Notes: generated by a model from the letters alone, not told the origin. A stretch of 64,000 bases of DNA from Adineta vaga (GCA_021613535.1 CP075493.1:12710001-12774000); one strand, 5' to 3'; positions 5,701 to 27,583 are shown, counted from the first letter of the stretch. Program-made: numbers and translations.

Positions 5701-6196
5701 GAAGAAGTTGAAGCCAAAGAAAATCACTCGATTGTTGAGTTAAATCAATTGTTGCATATTGATCTTGATTAAAAAAACTCCATTGAGAAAAACGTTGATC
5801 AATTAAATTGATTTGTTCTTCAATCGATAAACATAATGAATCAAATTCGTTATAAATTCCAATTATTTTTGGATGTTTATTTTGAATATTTTCAGTATTG
5901 AACATAAATATCGAAACAATTTGGTTAAGATCGTTAATGTGAGATAAAATTGAAGAATTAGATGTAATTAAAAAGAGTTTTTCCGTTTCAATTGATTTAA
6001 GAAAAGTCATACAAGAATCGAGTTCACTATGAAAAATTAACCAATTATTCAAATGAGATAATCGCATTTGAAAATATGTATTGACATCTGATAATGCATT
6101 ATCTGGATCAAACCAGACGAGAATAATATTTTCAATCTTTTTAGGGATATTTATTGAAAGAAGTTGCTCGCCTATACTCGTAGATACCATTGCCAT
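2795..6196 (-). CDS. Degenerate ADP-ribosyltransferase-like domain + long TPR array protein (1133 aa, single ORF)
   Basis: N-terminal ILVWFD and FLWLQLL...MIDTCRLYY region; VYRG and SVLFEI ART-fold strands; then many ~42-aa kinesin-light-chain-type TPR repeats (A..Y.Q.AL.I....Y...H). Confidence 0.85.
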   Translation of the reverse strand: MAMVSTSIGEQLLSINIPKKIENIILVWFDPDNALSDVNTYFQMRLSHLNNWLIFHSELDSCMTFLKSIETEKLFLITSNSSILSHINDLNQIVSIFMFNTENIQNKHPKIIGIYNEFDSLCLSIEEQINLIDQRFSQWSFFNQDQYATIDLTQQSSDFLWLQLLHKVILYLPRNETKSRKQMIDTCRLYYHDNIKELALIDEFEEKYQSDQAISCYMKCSFLRRIISRALRTEDTDQLYLLRDFLRDLIENFTHEYQNNIDLNTDELLVYRGMMLSNDELNQLKKNQHKLMAMKDFFIGYRSRSLALTSIPQHENLNSVLFEIEFYINQNIIFVNTTDILFDFNATFYIENIQQDNKDLWIVKLIPVQNGERIIEKYIHDVHRQYEDLSLSIIFGKLICDMSQWNQSQTYFEHLLNDSPNEDFAWIEFNLGQTHHWKGEWNKARVYYDQAYQRLMQTEPNRIKDSAIVLSTIGELLYRDGKYEEAYDYHQRALEIRKTYYSENHISIATSLENIGLIHEERRMTDKAILLFQQAIAMREEYFCNYRHVSIGSLLWKIGFTFIRLENFSKAYDSISQALIIYENYYSSGHVYAAIVLNYLATLLCYQELFDESCDFVQRAWSMQKKFYPFGHADMLISAKNLSDIKNKQEMYNESLDLLQQALQISNKYYSSSNTNTSAILTLIGWVFQNGEEDYEQAQNYYDQALTILERHYPSYHEQIAETFFVCSSLLVAKKKYLEALDIYKEVLQVLDNYHHMDTIIHRRIFNGCADVLCKLTRYDEALEYFQKALRIQEKFYGSSDWSIGNILFRIGMMRHVEEGYEEAMQYYQQSLTIFRKYSPGFQMSTSNVLGIIADVFSLQGKYDEAFEYKKQALDIRQRYYPSIYKPIVICLNFLGEIRKLQGQYDDAVHFFQESLDVFRIYNPSDQRSIVKKLKYIADIHDNDENYDQAINYYQQCVNILEKYYPEEYIEISELFNEIAKRYFHQENWELAIEYFIKCSEIQEINLGTEHRTTIVTLVTFVLMMRMINRYDLSLTYALKCLLAFEKTLPPDEYDIGRSLFIIGECYQHFNDQILALEYYKRALHVYEQTSWDSHEELQEVKTIIQDIEQVLNAQPNIQAVEQSESYAFEEDN

Positions 6197-14158: not shown

Positions 14159-15070
14159 TGATACGTTGGTGATATCCTTTATTTTTACACTTTTGTTTCT
14201 CTTATTTTATCTCGATTTACAAAGTGAAAGTAACTAGATAAAAGCGTTGAAGATAGCTCAGTAACTGTATATAGAATTCTACGTGTCAATTCTAACAGAA
14301 ATAAGGGTGGAAATTCAAGCATATCTTTATATTTTTTTTGTACATCACATATGCGTGATTTCTTTGAATGACTGAATATATCATGCTCAATTTATTTTGT
14401 ACAAAAACGCCGCCTTTGATAATACGATGTTTTATGAATGTAGACTGAGTTGATAAAGTCATGCCTGTTCTCATATTCACGCTATCGATAAAACACACAA
14501 TACCTAGGATATTTCTGAATAATTTAGTTCTTATTATACGGTTGAACTCCATTTGCTCATGCTCACAATATATTAAGTTATAGACTTAAATAAAGCGCAA
14601 ACCATTTCTATTATGAAAAATCAAACATAAATGAAATATATTCGGAATAAACAACAGTATGCCATTTCATTCTAAATAAAAGAGATTAAAAAAGTAATAG
14701 TATTATCATTATAAATTATGAAATATTAACCATTGACAGCGTTTATGGTATTTCACCGGCATGATTTAAACATATAAATGTATCAATTGAATATTCATTC
14801 ATATCTTGAAAGCAGGTGTAATATGGATGATGATAAAAACTGGATGTTTCACTCATATTCACATCCGCCAAAATTGTAAAAAATAAGAATTAACAAGTTG
14901 ATTGGTTTATGACATCTATACAAAGAAAGCGACATTTCCTTTATTGGTATTCTTTACGTCAATACGACGTCTATGAATCATATCTTACTATTTACAAACA
15001 TAGGAAAACGTATTCCAAACACACAAAAAAATCAAATAGTTTCGTCAGATTTATTTATTACATATTCATA

Positions 15071-16201
15071 ATGACTGAAAATAACATTGAAATTACCAAG
15101 AACAATATTCCATCTGTTATGGTAGCAGCTCAACAGATAACCTATGGAAATGTTCGCGATGTGTTGAAACTTGATGATAATGTTGTTGTTCCTCGAGAAT
15201 TAACGTCTAAACAAGTTCTTGTTCGTGTTTATGCTGCATCAATAAATCCGGCCGATTGTAAATTATTATATGGAGACGTGTCTCTGGTTATTCGATATTC
15301 ATTTCCTCATATTCCTGGTGGTGACATAGCTGGTATTGTTGTTGATGTTGGTTCAGCTGTCGAACGTTTTCGTATTGGTGATCATGTTTATGGAAATTTA
15401 GGAACTAATGGAGGAGGTTATGCAGAATATGCTCGCGCAAATGAATCAATGTTAGCTCTTAAACCAACGAATTTAACTATGGAAGAAGCTGCAGCTATTC
15501 CATTAGCTTGTGAAACAAGTTATGAAGCATTATTTCAAAGATGCTCATCACCTGTTGGAAAAGGAACGAAATTATTCATTTGTGGAGGTGGTTCAGCAAC
15601 GGGACTTTTTGCTATTCAATTAGCTAAAGCAGTTGGAGCATCTGTCGCTATCACATGTTCACAACGAAATCTTTTCTTAATTGAAAAATTAGGTTATGAA
15701 ATCATTCGAAATAAATCTGATTTCATCAATATCGACAATCAAATCTTAGTGATTGATTATAAAGAAAAAGATTTTGGTGAAGAATTACAAGGTGAGAATT
15801 ATGATATTGTATGTGATTGTGTTGGAGGACAACAAAATTGGATATCGACTCAACGAATTCTTAAACATGGTGGAGAATTTATTACTTTTGTTGGTGATGA
15901 TCCTAATCCTGTTCTTTCTTTAACATGGATAATTAATACGGCTGCAAATTTAATCAATCGAAAATTCTGGTCATATTTTGGTTCAGCACGTCATAATTAT
16001 ATTATGCATGCTCATAAACAAACACCGGAGAATCTCGAAGATATGCGAATCAACTATATTGAAAATGGAAAAGTTAAACCACTTATTGATAAAGTGTGTG
16101 ATTGGAGACAAGATGGAGCTGAAGCATTGTATTCTCTTTATGAAAGATCGAGAAGTGGAACAGCACAAGGAAAATTAATATTAAAACTCGCTGATGAATA
16201 A
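15071..16201 (+). CDS. MDR-family NAD(P)H quinone oxidoreductase-like protein (zinc-independent, RTN4IP1-like)
   Basis: VLVRVYAASINPAD, IPGGDIAGIV, GGYAEY, EEAAAIPLA, GGGSATG nucleotide-binding loop, C-terminal AQGKLIL. Likely start MTENN at 15071. Confidence 0.9.
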   Translation: MTENNIEITKNNIPSVMVAAQQITYGNVRDVLKLDDNVVVPRELTSKQVLVRVYAASINPADCKLLYGDVSLVIRYSFPHIPGGDIAGIVVDVGSAVERFRIGDHVYGNLGTNGGGYAEYARANESMLALKPTNLTMEEAAAIPLACETSYEALFQRCSSPVGKGTKLFICGGGSATGLFAIQLAKAVGASVAITCSQRNLFLIEKLGYEIIRNKSDFINIDNQILVIDYKEKDFGEELQGENYDIVCDCVGGQQNWISTQRILKHGGEFITFVGDDPNPVLSLTWIINTAANLINRKFWSYFGSARHNYIMHAHKQTPENLEDMRINYIENGKVKPLIDKVCDWRQDGAEALYSLYERSRSGTAQGKLILKLADE

Positions 16202-18399: not shown

Positions 18400-18752
18400 A
18401 TGCCGACAAGATATCAGTCGGAGCATTCATTGAAAGCGAAAAATATTGAACGAACTACCGTCTTAAAAGTCGCTAAATGTTTTGCTAATATTGAAGATCC
18501 TTTTGTTGGATTTGAGTGTGAAGATAAGGGTGGTAAATATTTGCAATTACGGGCACATTAATATGATAATCAATGAAAACGAGAAACATGAATATATGGA
18601 CAAAACTTATGAATGGTACAAAAAGATTATAAACAATAATTAACGGAGGTATTTACTATGATGGTCCGCGAAACAAAGAGAATGTGTGGCAGACTGAGGA
18701 TCAAGAGAAGAATTCTAAATTTATTGTGGACATGGAGAAATACATGCATTAA
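18400..18752 (+). pseudogene. Degraded coding relic of unknown family
   Basis: Protein-like pieces in shifting frames (MPTRYQSEHSLKAKNIERTTVLKVAKCFANIEDPFVGFECEDKGG; YEWYKKII; YYDGPRNKENVWQTEDQ), interrupted by stops. Confidence 0.3.
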
Positions 18753-19344
18753 TTCATATAACTTGAAAAGACTATGTTTTATTTCTCAACTTTACTGTCC
18801 TTCTTATAATCAATCCTCAAAGATTCGTTGATCGATCATCTTCTATTGATATAATCCGATTGAAATCCTTCTTTTTTCCTTTCATTTTCGTGTAACTCTT
18901 TTACGTTAGTCCTATATTTCATTATTTGCAAACAGCTATTCTTCATCGATAAAGAATTAAGTTAAAAATATAAATCAATGTTCTTAATCACCTTTTTGCA
19001 TGAATGTGAGTGTCTATGAAATGAATAGAAATTTCATTCGCTTTTAGAATTCGCAATTGCATCGAAACAATTACCATCATAATTAGATTTATTCGTGCTA
19101 AAAACCAAGACATATTGTTTACGTTGATCAAGAACATACAGTTTACATGACGTGTACTGCGCAATTCCTGAAATTTCTACGTTATTTTCTAGTAATTGTA
19201 ACCAATGCATTCTCTTTGTCATGCATGAAAAATCGAATGTATAAAAGGTAAATGATAGATGCATGACACAAATCAAACACTATACAGCAATACAACGAAT
19301 ACACTGCGACAACAAAAAACAACGTCGTTGCCTTCCCATCCGAA

Positions 19345-20610
19345 ATGAATCGATCCGAAAGATTGGAAATTACTCGTTTCTTTCAAGAATTTGATCAAAA
19401 CAAAATTGGTTACATTAGCAAAGATGAACTAAAAGAATGTTTGATGAAAGCAAATACAAAGCTAATAAATGTAATACTTAAAACTTTGTTAAACCAAATA
19501 AAACAAGATAAAGATGGACAAGTGTCTCTCCCTGAATATACAAAGCTTATGGAAAAGATCAATTCTGACGAACACAAAATCATCACCAATGAACAATATA
19601 GTCTTCTTAATAGCATTCTGCAAAAACAACATGCGCGCGAGAGAGAAGCACAAGCAAAAATAGATTATGTACTTACGAATGATACTCCAAGTCGAAAAGA
19701 TTGTTTTAGTAATAGTTTGACAAAAGAACATGTTGACAGTATCTATGAATTTATAAAGAATCATCCTCTCTACCATTGGCATCAAGCACTTGGTTATGGA
19801 ATTTGTGTTTATCGTGCGGTACTCATGCGTGCGATGGCTGAAACAATGTGTTCTCTAATGCCTAAAGCATCTGGAGCGTTGGCTTTTATAAATTTTCAGG
19901 GACTTGACAAATCTTCCAAATCATCCCGTAAGATGAATAGACGTGGCTATTATGCTTCACAGTATAGACCCTTTTACATGAATACATCTAATGGTTTTCG
20001 CATTCCACTTAGAGGCAATATGCTTTCTTTGCTGAATTCCATAAGAATACCGCATGTAGCATTGTGTGCGAATGTGAAAGGTATAGGACCGATGGTTATC
20101 GATCCAGCATATACATATGATTCTATCTCAGACGGCCCACTCAGCATAAAAGAGTGGATTAAGCAACTAATCGAGCAGGATACTATCAACGAACGTATTG
20201 AGCACGGATATGTATCAATTCAGCCCGAATGGTCTCCTTGGACAATGAGTCATTTGTATCTATTAACAAACGGTGAAGCGTTACTGGATCCTAACACCTT
20301 TATGAGTGTGCCCACTTTGGAACACGTTATTAATGTCTTAACTATGTATCGTTTGATGGTTACAGAAAATCAACCTCCAACAAACTACTTACCAAGCCCA
20401 GAAGAAGTAAATGCTTATTTCCGAGCATTCATCAAGAAATGTGATGCAAAAGAAGAATTTATAACTTATATGGATAATGTTGCAAAATATGTAGAAAATC
20501 TTGGAGATCACTTTCCTCCACCAGGTCCAGCGCCTCTTCTTTCACCACCAGATCCAGTTTATTTCACTCTGAGTGAGGGTGATGTTATGATAACTCATTC
20601 CTTCACTTAG
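19345..20610 (+). CDS. EF-hand pair fused to a protein-glutaminase-like (papain-fold Cys-His-Asp) domain
   Basis: EF loops DQNKIGYISKDE and KQDKDGQVSLPE; GIC154VYRAVLM, PH237VA, VID253P...GPLSIKEW; single exon, 421 aa. Confidence 0.75.
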   Translation: MNRSERLEITRFFQEFDQNKIGYISKDELKECLMKANTKLINVILKTLLNQIKQDKDGQVSLPEYTKLMEKINSDEHKIITNEQYSLLNSILQKQHAREREAQAKIDYVLTNDTPSRKDCFSNSLTKEHVDSIYEFIKNHPLYHWHQALGYGICVYRAVLMRAMAETMCSLMPKASGALAFINFQGLDKSSKSSRKMNRRGYYASQYRPFYMNTSNGFRIPLRGNMLSLLNSIRIPHVALCANVKGIGPMVIDPAYTYDSISDGPLSIKEWIKQLIEQDTINERIEHGYVSIQPEWSPWTMSHLYLLTNGEALLDPNTFMSVPTLEHVINVLTMYRLMVTENQPPTNYLPSPEEVNAYFRAFIKKCDAKEEFITYMDNVAKYVENLGDHFPPPGPAPLLSPPDPVYFTLSEGDVMITHSFT

Positions 20611-21487
20611 TCTCATCGTTCTCCTCATTTTAGCTTCAATTCTTCAGAGAACCCTATTTTTTGAAAACAAACGAAGTTGATTTTTTTTACATAGGAAGAT
20701 GCATCAAACTCTTCTCTTTCCATAACACATGTAGGTTTTTCGTTAAACAACTAAATTTATTCGAAAAAACTTGGATTCTACTAGCATGATTTTTCACAGT
20801 TTTCAGAAAATTTGAGTTTTAATAATCAGAATAGAAATTGCATATTTAAACTTTATCCTTAGCATTGGACCGATAAATATACGATTTTAATGAGTCTAGT
20901 TTTTAAGCATTAAAACAAACATTTAATACTAATTTCTATAGAGTAAAATACATGAATGCTATGATGGCACCATTATTGAGAGATAATGGACGTATTGTTG
21001 ATGTTAGTATTAGGTTCAGATCAATAATATTAAATAACTGTTTGCAAGACTTAAAAATAAAACTATTCGATCCAAACATAAAAGAAACTCAATTAGAACA
21101 AATATTTTTCTAGATCTGGTTTCTTTTTTCTATTACTATATGCAATGATCTAAAATAAATCAGTTAATAGATACAAAACATAAACTTTATATTATTTACT
21201 TTTAATGCAATGGAGAAAAGATTGAACATGATACATAAACATTCATCAGCCTTCAAAAGATTCGTTTGATCGACTTTATTGAGTAAATCAATTGCTTACA
21301 AGATATCCATGACCATATTAAATTGAATTTCTTTCGTTCATTTCTGTTCAATCAAACTGCCCTTTTTAGGTGTGCATGCTTTTTCTTTGTTATTGATGCT
21401 CGTACAGAGCCGTTATAAATTTATTTGCACCGTTCTTATTCACGAATACAGACAACAAAAAAATATTTTAATTATATAAAAAAAATA

Positions 21488-23329
21488 TTAGATCTTCCAA
21501 CCACCAGTTAAATACATGACATTTTCTGGATCCCAAGTTTTTCGAATATTTTGTAATCTTGGCAGATTCTTCCCATAAATCAACGATACAGGCGTTGTTT
21601 CTAAAGCAAAATTCGGATAGATAATTTGTTCGGTAGCATTATTATATTGTCCATCTGCGATCATCGTTTTTAATAATGTATCAGCAATTGATTGTGTTGC
21701 ATTCATAAAAATCGAATCATCAGATGTTAAATTCCATTTTGAAATTACGCAGATAGGAAACGTTCCATTGGAAGAAATACGCGGATTGAAGGCACCTTCA
21801 ACTGAATGTTCTAGATGTTTCGAACTTTGTAGAAGAACAAGAATGGATATATCGCCATCATGTTTTGATGCTAATTCAGTATAATAATCCATGACCTGAT
21901 TGCCAATTGTCTTGAGTAGCTGAGTACTGAGTTCCTTCGACAAAACCGAATGATAGCGACCACTATAATAATACAAAAAAATCATGACTCGTTGATTTTC
22001 AAACAACATTAACAATTCTATCACTTTACCGTATATTATCGCTAAATGATCTACTCCAGAACTCCATCATTCGTCTGGTATTCAATTGCCAATATGATCA
22101 ATATCAACAAATTCCTTGTAAATATGTTCTGGTGCGCTTGGTCCATCATAAATAGCTGATAAACGTATAGTTAATACACCAGATTCAATATAGAATACTA
22201 ATTCAATTTGTGCTCTTGCATCTTGATTATTCTTTTGAAAATTAACTGCTGCATTAATGAATCGATCAAATTTTGTTGAGTTATCAATAGAATAAGTAAG
22301 AATACCACCATAGATTTGTCTTTGAGGTACCACATGCATTTTGAAATTAGTGACAATACCAAAATTATTGTATCCACCTTTCAAACCAAAGAATATGTCT
22401 GGATAAGAATTTTTGTTTACGTGTACAATCGTCCCACTTGGAGTTACTAACTAAATATATAACAAAGAATATCGAATCGAATACAATTCTTTGTAAAATA
22501 CAATATTTTACTTCGTATTCAATAACACTATCCATTGTCAGACCATACTGATTCGTTTTCCAACCATAACCACCACCGAGAGTAACACCAGCAACACCAG
22601 CTGTACCTTCACGTCCACCATTGACAGTAACATTGTAAGGCTCAAGAAACTTGTATACCTCAAGCCAAACAAGTCCTGCTCCTAAACGTACCGTTTGTTC
22701 TTGAGAATCGAAAGTGATTGAATTCAAACGTCTCATAACAATATGAATGCCTGTTGTTGAACTGAAATTTGGATTAGTTGCGTGACCACCTCCCTTGATA
22801 CCAAATGGAACTCGTCGTTCTCGAATAAGTTGCATCTATTTTCGGAAAAATTGTATTTCAACTCCAGCTAACGAACATCAATGATACTTACAATAATCGC
22901 AACATCAGCACTTATACCCGGTTCTACACTGCATACGGATAGAGCACTCGAAGACCATGTATGATGATGAATACCTTGAAAATATCTTTCATCTGATGGA
23001 AAGAACACTTCCGAAGCACGACTGATTCTATCTTGAATTGTGAGACATGTAGATAAAGTCAACAGATGCTCATCTACAATCAAATAACATTTTTGTTTTC
23101 ATTTTCACCATTAAGACTTATGTTTGAAAATTAATTCATTGATAAATATTACTTACAAGAATAATCTGTCCTGACATTTGAAATTGTTCGTCCAGAAATC
23201 TCTAAAATAGTCGAGATGTTATCGCCGAACGGTTTCTCAGACGATATATTTACTGTTATTTCCAATAAATAACAATAGAACACAAACCAGTTGACCAATT
23301 GCACCCGTCAGTTCACTAGAATATTTCAT
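21488..23329 (-). CDS. Secreted FAD-linked oxidase (berberine-bridge-enzyme/VAO family, fungal-like); one 1-bp frameshift near 22083
   Basis: PFGIKGGGH (covalent FAD His), GVAGVTLGGG, GLKGGYNNFGIVT, YPNFA and YGKNLPRLQNIRKTWDPENVM (BBE tail); six predicted exons with a signal-like N-terminus. Confidence 0.85.
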
Positions 23330-23747: not shown

Positions 23748-25405
23748 ATGACTACTTATTTTACATACGTTCTTATTTTCATTATTTCTGTCCTCCACTA
23801 TTCTTTCGTAACTTCAGCATCTGTTTATGTGACATATATTCTATCTTATGAAAATACTGAATCAACAAATATCAATATACAAATTCAATTTACAAATGAT
23901 CGAAATACTGAACTTCAGTTACGAGGACCACAAATCTTTATCATGCCACGTGCTATTCCGTCTGGTTATAATTTACAATTTTATGATTTATACGTCGAGA
24001 ATTTAATTGCTAAAACTACGGATGAATCTATAGTTCCTATTAAGAAAGACAGTACAGGTGGTCCACGATGGATATTAGAATGTACAGCAAATCAAACATT
24101 ATCGAATATCTCTTATTCAATCAATTTAACCAAACATGAAAAAGGAATTTTAAGTGGTGGCGATTCATCAAAAATACGTCTACATCAGTATATAAGTATT
24201 CTCGGTTATTCTGTTTTTGGTTATCTCGAACAAATGGATAATAAGGAAGATTTTCCAATCATGTTAATCATTCATAGACCATCTGATTGGCCTATACATT
24301 GTACATTAGTATCTGGTGTTGCTAAAAATTATTATCATCTAGCTGATTCTCAAATCTATATGGGACCGAATTTAATCTATAAATATGCATCGATTCCTTT
24401 TGATCAATCAAATATTCAAATCGATAATAAACTTACATTCAAACAAGAACAAAACAAAACAACATTATCATTTTATGTTATTATCTATACGGAAGATGTG
24501 GAGAATCTGAATACTGATATGGTTTTTAATTTAAGTGTACAAGCAATGAGAAATCTATTAATCTATTATGATACTAAGAATAATAATACTTGTCCATTTT
24601 TATTCTATACAGTTGGAATAGAAATGATTACACCATTGGATGACTCACATACGTATGGATTTAGTATGGAACATTTATATAGTTGTACAATAGATATTCA
24701 GTATGGTACAGGAATAAATAAAAATAGTACACAAGATAATATAACTCGATTTCAATACAATCTCGCACATCATATTCAACATGCATGGATACCAAAACGA
24801 TTATTTTCAACTTATTATTATCCATTTACTTTTGAATTACCACCAGTAATTGATACAATCTGGTTTAATGAAGTAAGAATATAGGTATATACTATATATA
24901 ATAAGAAACTTTATAATTCTATGATACAAAGGGATTTGGACAATACCTAGCAATGGATGCAATGGCTAATGTTTTACCATCAAATGAATCTGAACAATAT
25001 CGTGACTATCTAATGAAAAATCGTTTTGAATACTTTTATCATTTAGCACCATTATTCATCCAACAAATGCCATTGAAATATTTATCTACGATTGCATCAT
25101 CTTTTTATGCAATTGATTTTCGAACAGGTAGTCATTTATTTGCACGTGGTGCATTAATGGCTAGAGATATCGATGATTGGATACAATCAAAAACTCAAAA
25201 ACAAAAGTAAATGATTCGTAGCTCACATGCATTCAAAAACTTTCATATTTATCATCATAGAAGTCTTCGTGATGGTATTGTTTATATGATCAAATGGTCG
25301 GAATGCAATTCATACAAAGTTGCATTTACAATGGAACAATTTCCGATGTTTTTTCTTAATGCTACTGATATTGATATTACTCCAGTTTTAAATAAATGGT
25401 TATAA
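23748..25405 (+). CDS. Secreted M61 glycyl-aminopeptidase-like metallopeptidase with HHxxH motif (3 exons)
   Basis: Signal peptide; MPRAIPSGY, NYYHLADS, FSMEHLYS, LAHHIQHAWIPKRL, WFNE|GFGQY across intron 24873-24931; second intron near 25207-25260. Confidence 0.8.
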
Positions 25406-25825: not shown

Positions 25826-27583
25826 ATGGCAAAGCAAAATTTATTCATGTTAAAATTATGGCTAATACTAACTATTGGCTTCACAAATGCTGATGTTGAA
25901 CTTCAAACACGGAAAGGAATTATTTATGGTCAACAAACTCAATACTCAAATGAGTATTTAGGGTTAGAGAAACTTTGAATATTCAAAATATAAATCTTAC
26001 TCTTAATATGAATGTTTTTTAGAATTCAATATGCGACAACAGAACGATGGAAACCACCAGTTGATCTTGCATCTGAAAAATTTTCACAAGGTTCATTTCA
26101 AGCAACATCCTTTGGTCCATGTTGTCCTCAATCAAATGCAGGAGTTTTTATACCTGCACAAGATGAACAATGTTTGTATCTGAATATATATACACCATTA
26201 AACACAACAAATCAATCTTTAATACCAGTTCTTGTTTGGATACATGGAGGTGGTCTTCAAGTTGGTTGCTCATCACAAAGTAATCCTGTTTTATACAATG
26301 GTACAAATATTATTGCTAATGCACCTTCAGAACAACCAGTTATTGTCGTAACAATAAATTATAGATTAGGTATACTAGGTGACTTGTACTTGAATGAATT
26401 AGTCGCGGAAAATCCATCGGAATGGCCTACAGCTGGGAATTATTATTATCTGGATATGTTATCAGCATTGCGTTGGATCAAAATGAATATTCATGACTAT
26501 GGCGGTAATCCTGACAATGTTTTACTATTTGGTGAAAGTTCTGGAGCTAATGCTGTTATTGATATTGGTGCATTAAAAGGATCAGCAAATCTTTATCAAC
26601 ATATTATATCACAATCGGGTGGTGGTGGATTTCATGCTTATTATACAAATACGAGCAATGCTTTGATAGAATCGAATCAGATTATTCGAAATATGAATTG
26701 TACAAATCAAAATATTTTGATCTGTTTACGTAATTCTTCGATTTCTAATTTACTTTCTGCTTATGGTTTACATCAAACAAAAGTAATTGTTGATAAATAT
26801 TTTCTACCCTATTATCCACCGTTAGCGATTGAGAAAGGAATATACAATGAAAATATTAGTATGATCATTGGTCGAAATGAATATGAATCTCCTATGTGTT
26901 TTTCTGATCCGGATATGAATTTAACTACTATCAGACAAATGCTCATTTCAGGTTTCGGAGAAAAATGGACGGATATATTTATTGAACATTCTCAATTGAG
27001 TAATTGTTCAACAGATAGAAATGCTACAAATCGTTGTTGTGATATGGCTCGTTTACTTCTCACAGATCTCGTACTTGATTGTAGTGCTCGTCGTATTTAC
27101 AATAATTTATATAAAGAAAACAATCAACAAACATTATATTGGTATCATATGGATTGTAATTATGGTGTGTGTCCAGTAAAATCAGCTGCAGAAGGAAAAG
27201 GTCTATGTATGCATGCAACAGAACTTCCATATGTCTTTGGAACAGTAAGCGACATGTATTCAAATGATCTACCTAATTGTACATGGGATGATGAAACAAG
27301 AATGTTTTCAAGTCAAATCATTTCACATTGGATCAATTTAGCAACAAATGGAGAACCATTGAAAGAATGGTTAAGCTATAGCCCATCAAAACCAAAATAT
27401 TTTCAAATTACACCTTTTCATCAATTTTCATCTTTCACATCCGATAGAAATTGTTCACGCATTGATCAATATGAACAAGAGATGGTCGAGCAGATGTTTG
27501 GCGATTCCAAAAATCATGGTTCACGAAACTATGTAACCATAAATATTACTATTTTACTCTTTGTATTTATACTAATATTTTAA
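25826..27583 (+). CDS. Type-B carboxylesterase, secreted/GPI-anchored-like (2 exons)
   Basis: Signal peptide MLKLWLILTIGFTNAD; EQCLYLNIYTP, WIHGGG, INYRLG, GESSG nucleophile elbow, MHATELPYVFG; hydrophobic C-tail. Confidence 0.93.

Follow-up and report, generated by a model that had tools for sequence, protein, structure and literature searches.

Protein glutaminases (PGs; Pfam family PF18626) are secreted bacterial enzymes with an industrial use in the deamidation of food proteins. Calcium control exists in the papain/transglutaminase superfamily, with calpain, a penta-EF-hand enzyme, and LapG as examples. NTAQ1 is a cytosolic glutamine deamidase of animals whose closest structural homologue is PG (PMC4214742). 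SseI and the C3 domain of the Pasteurella multocida toxin (PMT) are bacterial deamidase effectors that act inside eukaryotic cells. We analyzed a 64,000-nucleotide stretch of chromosome 1 of the bdelloid rotifer Adineta vaga (12.710 to 12.774 Mb), called the window here, which carries a gene that joins an N-terminal EF-hand pair to a PG-like domain. A preliminary description, made from the DNA sequence alone, had read this gene as a horizontally acquired, calcium-regulated cytosolic protein deamidase. Our best explanation, to which we give a probability of about 0.62, is that it is an expressed single-exon gene for an intracellular enzyme of the papain/transglutaminase superfamily, nearest to the bacterial PGs, and that its EF-hand module is not a conserved calcium switch. 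We consider it very probable that the fold and catalytic type are those of a Cys-His-Asp acyl-transfer enzyme, while deamidation of glutamine specifically is a tentative prediction, at somewhat less than even odds.

The gene is an uninterrupted open reading frame (ORF) of 421 amino acids with an ATG start, on the plus strand at 19345-20610, as the preliminary description had placed it. The motifs quoted there were also correctly numbered (VDSIYEFIKN at 130-139, GIC154, PH237VA, VID253PAY, and GPLSIKEW at 264-271). The C-terminal 322 amino acids are 100% identical to the deposited protein I4U23_004158 (P0001, 394 amino acids), but the N termini differ. The deposited model uses small upstream exons and an intron of ~365 bp at about 19249-19613, and the segment that it removes coincides exactly with the EF-hand region. 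Contigs from three RNA-like runs (X1 to X3) contradict this model, since they form one unbroken tile over 19340-20672 with no joint inside the gene, are continuous through the boundary between the EF-hands and the enzyme domain, and in three cases cross the NCBI acceptor at 19613 unspliced. These runs gave no contigs on either flank within the 2.5 kb examined and none on 18600-19339, which includes the upstream exons of the NCBI model, unlike a DNA run that covered the entire 2.5 kb, gene and flanks alike. The RNA-like depth was low, and the contigs reveal neither strand nor rare isoforms. The tiling of the gene body alone, the unspliced 19613 position, and the lack of upstream-exon contigs support a single-exon transcript that includes the EF-hands, and the deposited I4U23_004158 is probably misannotated at its 5' end. 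The A. ricciae homologues are likewise single-exon genes. These results show that the locus is a genuine, transcribed, single-exon gene of A. vaga, in agreement with the intron-free structure proposed before. Bacterial contamination was ruled out, as the gene is embedded in an 18.1-Mb chromosome (at 12.73 Mb), has a G+C content (~31%) that is the same as in the rest of the window, and has single-exon relatives on A. ricciae contigs.

Comparison of the reference with contigs of other runs gave 16 single-base differences in the coding part of 19530-20440. Ten of them are nonsynonymous, among them L68F, Y258F, and C366R, and C154, H237, and D253 are untouched. These differences may represent allelic or strain variation.

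For comparison with PG, we collected 120 bacterial PG loci by means of a back-translated GCYARAHKM pattern and extracted 114 distinct domains. The rotifer proteins scored just 3 to 7 bits against a hidden Markov model of these domains, and a profile-profile comparison was therefore needed. When four rotifer cores were aligned with the 114 bacterial domains in hhalign, the probability was 91.9% (E value, 6.9e-7; score, 48.6), compared with a maximum score of 22.5 in 60 column shuffles and a score of 15.4 for the reversed alignment. Judged by these controls, the predicted motif resemblance to PG exceeds chance. The confident segment spans His..Asp..GP..W, and with looser settings the nucleophile helix (GIC-VYRAVLMR with DGCYARAHKMR) and the helix before it (IY..IKN with LF..IKN) also paired, both colinear with the rest. 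MAFFT alone placed C154, H237, and D253 on the bacterial triad, with spacings of 41 and 20 in the Chryseobacterium row, the same as in the PG triad Cys156/His197/Asp217 (PMC4214742; PMC13298967). The triad is conserved in all four rotifer sequences that cover the core, and H, D, P254, P265, and W271 are near-invariant over the rotifer and bacterial rows. PF18626 was the only Pfam family matched repeatedly, in three of six family members, weakly and over the His-Asp region; the best of these matches had E values of about 0.0021 to 0.0026, with the A. ricciae protein P0003 at 18.4 bits.

Structure prediction pointed to the same family. AlphaFold2 (AF2) run on the six-sequence, rotifer-only alignment produced a poor model (predicted local distance difference test [pLDDT], 42.7), for which PGs occupied ranks 1 to 3, 5, and 6 of 350,542 PDB chains with nonsignificant E values. 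A second run, on an alignment to which 37 PG rows had been added, reached a pLDDT of 71.7 and a predicted TM-score of 0.73. The top Foldseek match of this seeded model was PG (2ksv; E value, 5e-3; TMt, 0.58). VIA, a search independent of Foldseek, returned the PGs 2zk9, 3a54, and 8z3i at Z scores of 10.1 to 10.6, with root mean square deviations of 3.1 to 3.3 Å over 145 to 153 of 185 residues. The next families were SseI (7.0), NTAQ1 (6.2), and then LapG, VASH1, and PMT (~5), and most VIA neighbors with a Z score of ≥5 over the core belong to one clan. These structural neighbors correspond to "cluster III" of the papain-like superfamily (PMC10318531). The top structural row in the ESM Atlas was a PF18626 cluster, and the ten best named language-model neighbors, which do not depend on an alignment, all fall in the transglutaminase-like clan. 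Both models predict Cys154 at the N terminus of a helix and His237 and Asp253 on successive strands, which form a hairpin in the seeded model, an arrangement that, together with the clan neighbors, would place the domain in the papain/transglutaminase superfamily. The preliminary description had expected profile and Foldseek searches to recover PG, as hhalign against the bacterial domains and Foldseek with the seeded model did. Its view of the domain as a remote relative of the Chryseobacterium-type PG is borne out by the aligned, conserved triad and by PGs being the best fold matches.

Several observations weigh against this reading. The A. vaga enzyme domain had no Pfam match up to an E value of 10, neither it nor the family reached the PF18626 gathering threshold (25 bits), and the family profile matched no PDB sequence over the enzyme domain. 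Identity between the rotifer and bacterial sequences is just 14 to 21% in the joint alignment. Because the bacterial set was collected through GCYARAHKM, the invariance of C, R, A, and M in that set is there by construction, and because PG rows were placed in the alignment, the fold matches of the seeded model are not independent. Proteases, transglutaminases, and acyltransferases adopt this fold as well, which leaves deamidation unproven. Finally, the identification of X1 to X3 as RNA is the guess of a tool, and its sole backing is the coverage restricted to the gene body. Related searches gave a similar picture: Pfam, NCBIfam, and PDB sequence searches with amino acids 100 to 421 returned nothing, and a six-frame PF18626 scan of the genome did not pick up the A. 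vaga locus.

PG from Chryseobacterium proteolyticum and its relatives (2zk9, 2ksv, 3a54, 3a56, and 8z3i) is the best match by profile as well as by structure. The rotifer domain has the Cys-His-Asp order and the secondary-structure elements of PG, the helix before the nucleophile, and the motifs C..RA..MR, HVA, IDP, and GP.....W. Unlike in PG, the stretch from the Cys helix to the His strand is ~40 residues longer, and the rotifer core sequences contain 2 to 5 cysteines rather than 9 to 11, with the disulfide cysteines of PG missing. An EF-hand pair and a linker replace the signal peptide and the inhibitory pro-peptide of ~114 amino acids, and a 108-amino-acid C-terminal extension follows the core of what is a eukaryotic and probably intracellular protein. 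The few cysteines and the absence of a signal peptide fit a reducing intracellular setting. The extension, which contains the conserved motif FPPPGPxPLLxPPxPVY, is predicted to form three helices and to end in a beta-hairpin, with a pLDDT of 76 to 86 across most of the helices in the seeded AF2 model; it has no counterpart in PG, and its fold matches were just generic helical ones.

In the predicted reaction, His237 and Asp253 would activate Cys154, whose thiolate would attack a glutamine side chain of a protein or peptide at its amide group. Ammonia would leave as a gamma-glutamyl thioester formed, and water would resolve the thioester to glutamate; with an amine acceptor in place of water, the outcome would be transamidation. 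This chemistry is our inference, and so are the nature of the substrate, the place of the enzyme in the cell, and whatever regulation it has. The same fold could serve a different chemistry, that of a cysteine protease or isopeptidase, a cross-linking transglutaminase, or an acyl or amide transferase, which we regard as rather unlikely. In its favor, two proteases (LapG and VASH1), an enzyme acting on amide bonds (CtaG), and arylamine N-acetyltransferases are among the lower structural neighbors, the language-model neighbors come from transglutaminase-like, DUF553, and Peptidase_C71 clusters and not from PF18626, and the ~40 extra core residues and the extension could reshape the substrate cleft. 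However, PGs lie well above all other families in the structural comparison (Z score of 10.6 versus 7.0), PF18626 is the sole Pfam family touched, motifs beyond the triad are common to the rotifer proteins and PG, and the neighbors SseI, NTAQ1, and PMT are themselves glutamine deamidases. A role as a defense effector, also raised in the preliminary description, is unsupported, as no PADLOC defense model matched.

The other described deamidases are more distant than PG. NTAQ1 has a transglutaminase-type fold, a Cys-His-Asp triad, and an intracellular location like the one predicted here (3c9q at a Z score of 6.2 in VIA, and 8jj* rows in Foldseek), but it is a far weaker match than PG and gives no sequence signal, and it is an EF-hand-free, single-domain protein found eukaryote-wide instead of being restricted to rotifers. 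With SseI (4g29; Z score, 7.0) and the PMT C3 domain (2ebf; Z score, 5.1), the rotifer domain has in common the cluster III fold (PMC10318531) and the Cys-His-Asp triad. The likeness is at the level of the fold alone, with no sequence signal and no delivery domains, and the rotifer gene is a host gene rather than a pathogen gene. As a concept, an animal protein deamidase of the cytosol has a precedent in NTAQ1 (PMC4214742). No annotation of the architecture itself was found, in line with the preliminary description: the proteins are entered in databases as "hypothetical" or "EF-hand domain-containing," and the literature library searched had no paper connecting PG with bdelloids, with PF18626 mentioned only in a survey of the papain superfamily (PMC10318531). 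We propose that the protein is a lineage-restricted relative of a known kind of enzyme, with a new domain architecture and a predicted activity.

The N-terminal EF-hand pair is well supported by Pfam (EF-hand_7, E value of 4e-10 and 40.3 bits against a cutoff of 30 over amino acids 9 to 69; EF-hand_1, E value of 3e-9 and 36.2 bits against a cutoff of 25.4), and the PDB sequence matches of the N terminus are calmodulins. Each A. vaga loop lacks one canonical ligand, as described before. Loop 1 (amino acids 17 to 28, DQNKIGYISKDE) has Ile at position 5 and retains D1, N3, G6, S9, and E12, and loop 2 (amino acids 53 to 64, KQDKDGQVSLPE) has Lys at position 1, so neither has the full canonical set of oxygen ligands, at positions 1, 3, 5, and 12 of the 12-residue loop. 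In A. ricciae P0002 (loops DRNRTGYIRKDQ and DADEDGRVCFIK), position 12 is Gln in loop 1 and Lys in loop 2, and both loops are thus without the bidentate Glu. The N terminus is not hydrophobic (maximum Kyte-Doolittle 19-residue mean, 1.19), and no signal peptide or transmembrane segment was found, which agrees with the earlier claim. The N-terminal 116 amino acids had no detectable similarity to 72 bacterial PG pro-regions (hhalign probability, 0.3%). The suggestion that an EF-hand module took the place of the pro-domain holds as far as position is concerned, since the EF-hand pair and linker stand there. A docking prediction of amino acids 1 to 116 against 117 to 421, with a score of 0.00 ("no answer"), is neutral evidence.

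Sequence searches recovered homologues from Adineta and from one further organism, represented in Logan (runs SRR33465384-476), and from no other source. A phmmer search with amino acids 100 to 421 against 1.84 billion representatives gave six matches, none of them bacterial, and word-indexed searches with a single sequence and with a profile gave three Adineta proteins and one Logan fragment and nothing else. As far as these sequences go, the combination of EF-hands with a PG-like domain has so far been seen only in bdelloid rotifers. The chromosome 5 copy of A. vaga is probably a pseudogenized ohnologue and retains a recognizable EF-hand 1 (83% identity over 23 amino acids). At the A. ricciae P0003 locus (contig CAJNOJ010000384.1), an upstream ORF of 73 codons (L131:5758-5982) contains the remnant of EF-hand 1, the second EF-hand is gone, and an in-frame stop at 5977-5979 abuts the annotated ATG at 5980. 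EF-hand remnants at all four Adineta loci indicate that the fusion is ancestral to the Adineta copies. Sequence comparison indicates repeated loss or erosion of the EF-hand module after that time, and the module is gone from two of the four Adineta loci. The Logan homologue has no EF-hand within 2.3 kb upstream, and in contigs of six runs it carries an in-frame TAG (2917-2919) at the position of Adineta Trp299, beyond which conservation resumes; this codon could be a recent nonsense mutation or a site of read-through.

The intron-free neighbor of the Logan homologue (L005:4698-5540, minus strand) encodes a protein of ~280 amino acids with no Pfam match. Its family has 121 six-frame matches in A. 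vaga, many of them intact frames of 275 to 300 amino acids, with a best identity of 45%. With more than 120 copies of this family in A. vaga, the source of the Logan sequence is probably another bdelloid.

Estimates of the ratio of nonsynonymous to synonymous substitution rates (dN/dS), which are approximate with dS near saturation, were 0.11 to 0.26 for the core across all three intact Adineta genes, about 0.45 for the EF-hands (against A. ricciae), 0.55 to 1.2 for the linker, and 0.29 to 0.72 for the C-terminal extension. Judged by these ratios, the enzyme core is the constrained part of the protein, and this includes the paralogue without EF-hands. It is very improbable that the gene is a decaying, nonenzymatic relic that is drifting toward a pseudogene and has a triad conserved by recency alone. 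The chromosome 5 pseudogene, the in-frame TAG in the Logan homologue, the high share of nonsynonymous coding variants (10/16), and the low RNA-like depth would fit such a relic. On the other side, the 421-codon frame is intact and transcribed, the core is constrained over near-saturated synonymous distances, and the triad and its motifs persist in a homologue that is just 35% identical.

The same comparisons bear on the calcium-gated deamidase of the preliminary description, in which Ca2+ bound to the EF-hands would release or activate the catalytic domain. Such gating could be accommodated by an EF-hand pair that is significant in Pfam, under some constraint, and ancestral to Adineta, that occupies the position of the bacterial inhibitory pro-peptide, and that has most of its ligands in loop 1 of A. 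vaga; calpain and LapG would be precedents in the superfamily. Like them, the rotifer protein would be a Cys-His-Asx enzyme joined to or controlled by calcium sites, and the LapG structure 4fgo (Z score, 5.5) is calcium bound. Calpain, however, has five canonical C-terminal EF-hands, compared with two degenerate N-terminal ones here. The evidence goes largely the other way: both A. vaga loops are degenerate, Glu12 is missing from both loops of P0002, P0003 keeps a constrained enzyme domain behind a stop that cuts off a decayed EF-hand, the Logan homologue has no EF-hand in the 2.3 kb upstream, and the module is lost at two of the four Adineta loci. Since the calcium ligands are decaying, the pair is more likely a structural, targeting, or lid module than a conserved calcium switch. 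We propose that it was an ancestral Adineta addition at the position of the bacterial secretion signal and inhibitory pro-peptide. Calcium gating is unlikely as an account of the gene; it is possible, if doubtful, for the A. vaga protein and is not a trait that the family conserves. The switch is at once the most eye-catching and the least supported part of the finding.

Horizontal gene transfer is a plausible origin. The PF18626 sample is entirely bacterial, no other animal homologue was found, the gene is intronless, and its neighbors are of foreign type, and together these make transfer the most economical explanation. A maximum-likelihood tree grouped the four rotifer sequences as monophyletic (100/99), on a branch of ~7 substitutions per site to all sampled bacteria and outside every sampled clade (Bacteroidota, Bdellovibrionota, and a mixed Acidobacteriota/Gemmatimonadota/Nitrospirota clade). 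This tree of sampled sequences, whose bacterial part is biased by the fishing motif, indicated no donor. The phylogeny anticipated by the preliminary description thus gave one rotifer clade but not its source, and the claim of horizontal acquisition has the bacterial sample and the missing animal homologues in its favor, with the 14 to 21% identity, the lack of a bacterial phmmer match, and the missing donor against it. A bolder version, in which bdelloids long ago captured a bacterial-type PG and turned it into an intracellular glutamine deamidase with a calcium-responsive EF-hand lid, at least in A. vaga, strikes us as quite improbable; if true, it would give animals a Gln-to-Glu posttranslational modifier without a counterpart in other metazoans.

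The reading that we prefer, an intracellular animal relative of PG with no conserved calcium switch, would extend the PG family to eukaryotes. It would also add a candidate for internal Gln-to-Glu modification, which in animals is otherwise mainly a matter of NTAQ1 and bacterial effector toxins. For bdelloid biology, this would be one more case of an intron-free gene, restricted to one lineage and probably of foreign origin, that is maintained by selection, with a clear history of EF-hand domain gain followed by piecemeal loss. The features of the gene and the copies of the family are collected in Table 1.

Table 1. Features of the A. vaga gene (window coordinates) and other copies of the family (coordinates on their own sequences); aa, amino acids
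Feature	Position	Strand	Evidence or state
Single-exon gene, 421 codons plus stop (EF-hand pair, linker, PG-like core, rotifer-specific C-terminal extension); A. vaga chromosome 1 copy	19345..20610	+	Intact; ORF, RNA-like contigs
EF-hand pair, aa 8-69	19366..19551	+	Pfam EF-hand_7 and EF-hand_1; calmodulin PDB matches
Linker, aa 70-116, poorly conserved, probably helical	19552..19692	+	19-30% identity between Adineta copies
PG-like papain/transglutaminase-fold core, aa 117-313	19693..20283	+	hhalign, joint alignment, AF2, VIA
Cys154 codon, predicted nucleophile	19804..19806	+	Aligned with catalytic Cys in 37/37 bacterial rows; 4/4 rotifer rows
His237 codon, predicted general base	20053..20055	+	His in 4/4 rotifer and 35/37 bacterial rows; inside confident hhalign segment
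Asp253 codon, predicted third triad member	20101..20103	+	Asp in 4/4 rotifer and 36/37 bacterial rows; inside confident hhalign segment
Rotifer-specific extension, aa 314-421 (108 aa)	20284..20607	+	Conserved in A. ricciae and the Logan homologue
Upstream exons of I4U23_004158, approximate; only the last exon (about 19195-19248) located	19034..19248	+	No RNA-like contig support
A. vaga chromosome 5 copy	4502592-4503428 (about 4.503 Mb)		Pseudogene; several in-frame stops and frameshifts
A. ricciae P0002			EF-hand pair and enzyme domain
A. ricciae P0003 locus			Decayed EF-hand 1, then in-frame stop; enzyme domain intact
Logan homologue, SRR33465438	L005:2353-3351		35% identical; triad and surrounding motifs kept

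The 430-amino-acid ORF at 14909-16201 was considered as a paralogue and rejected, as it encodes a zinc alcohol dehydrogenase. In A. ricciae, a 1,398-amino-acid protein of ART/ADP-ribosyl exotoxin type with TPR repeats is encoded directly upstream of the EF-hand/PG-like gene (L132:210-4406, CAJNOR010000668.1); it was not seen at the A. vaga locus. Downstream of the A. vaga gene, the window contains a berberine-bridge/FAD-binding oxidase split over several ORFs (21488-22835, minus strand) and a protein with an M61-peptidase N-terminal domain (23748-24884, plus strand), both of bacterial- or fungal-type families, as well as a carboxylesterase (26012-27583, plus strand), and the surroundings of the locus thus seem rich in genes of foreign appearance.

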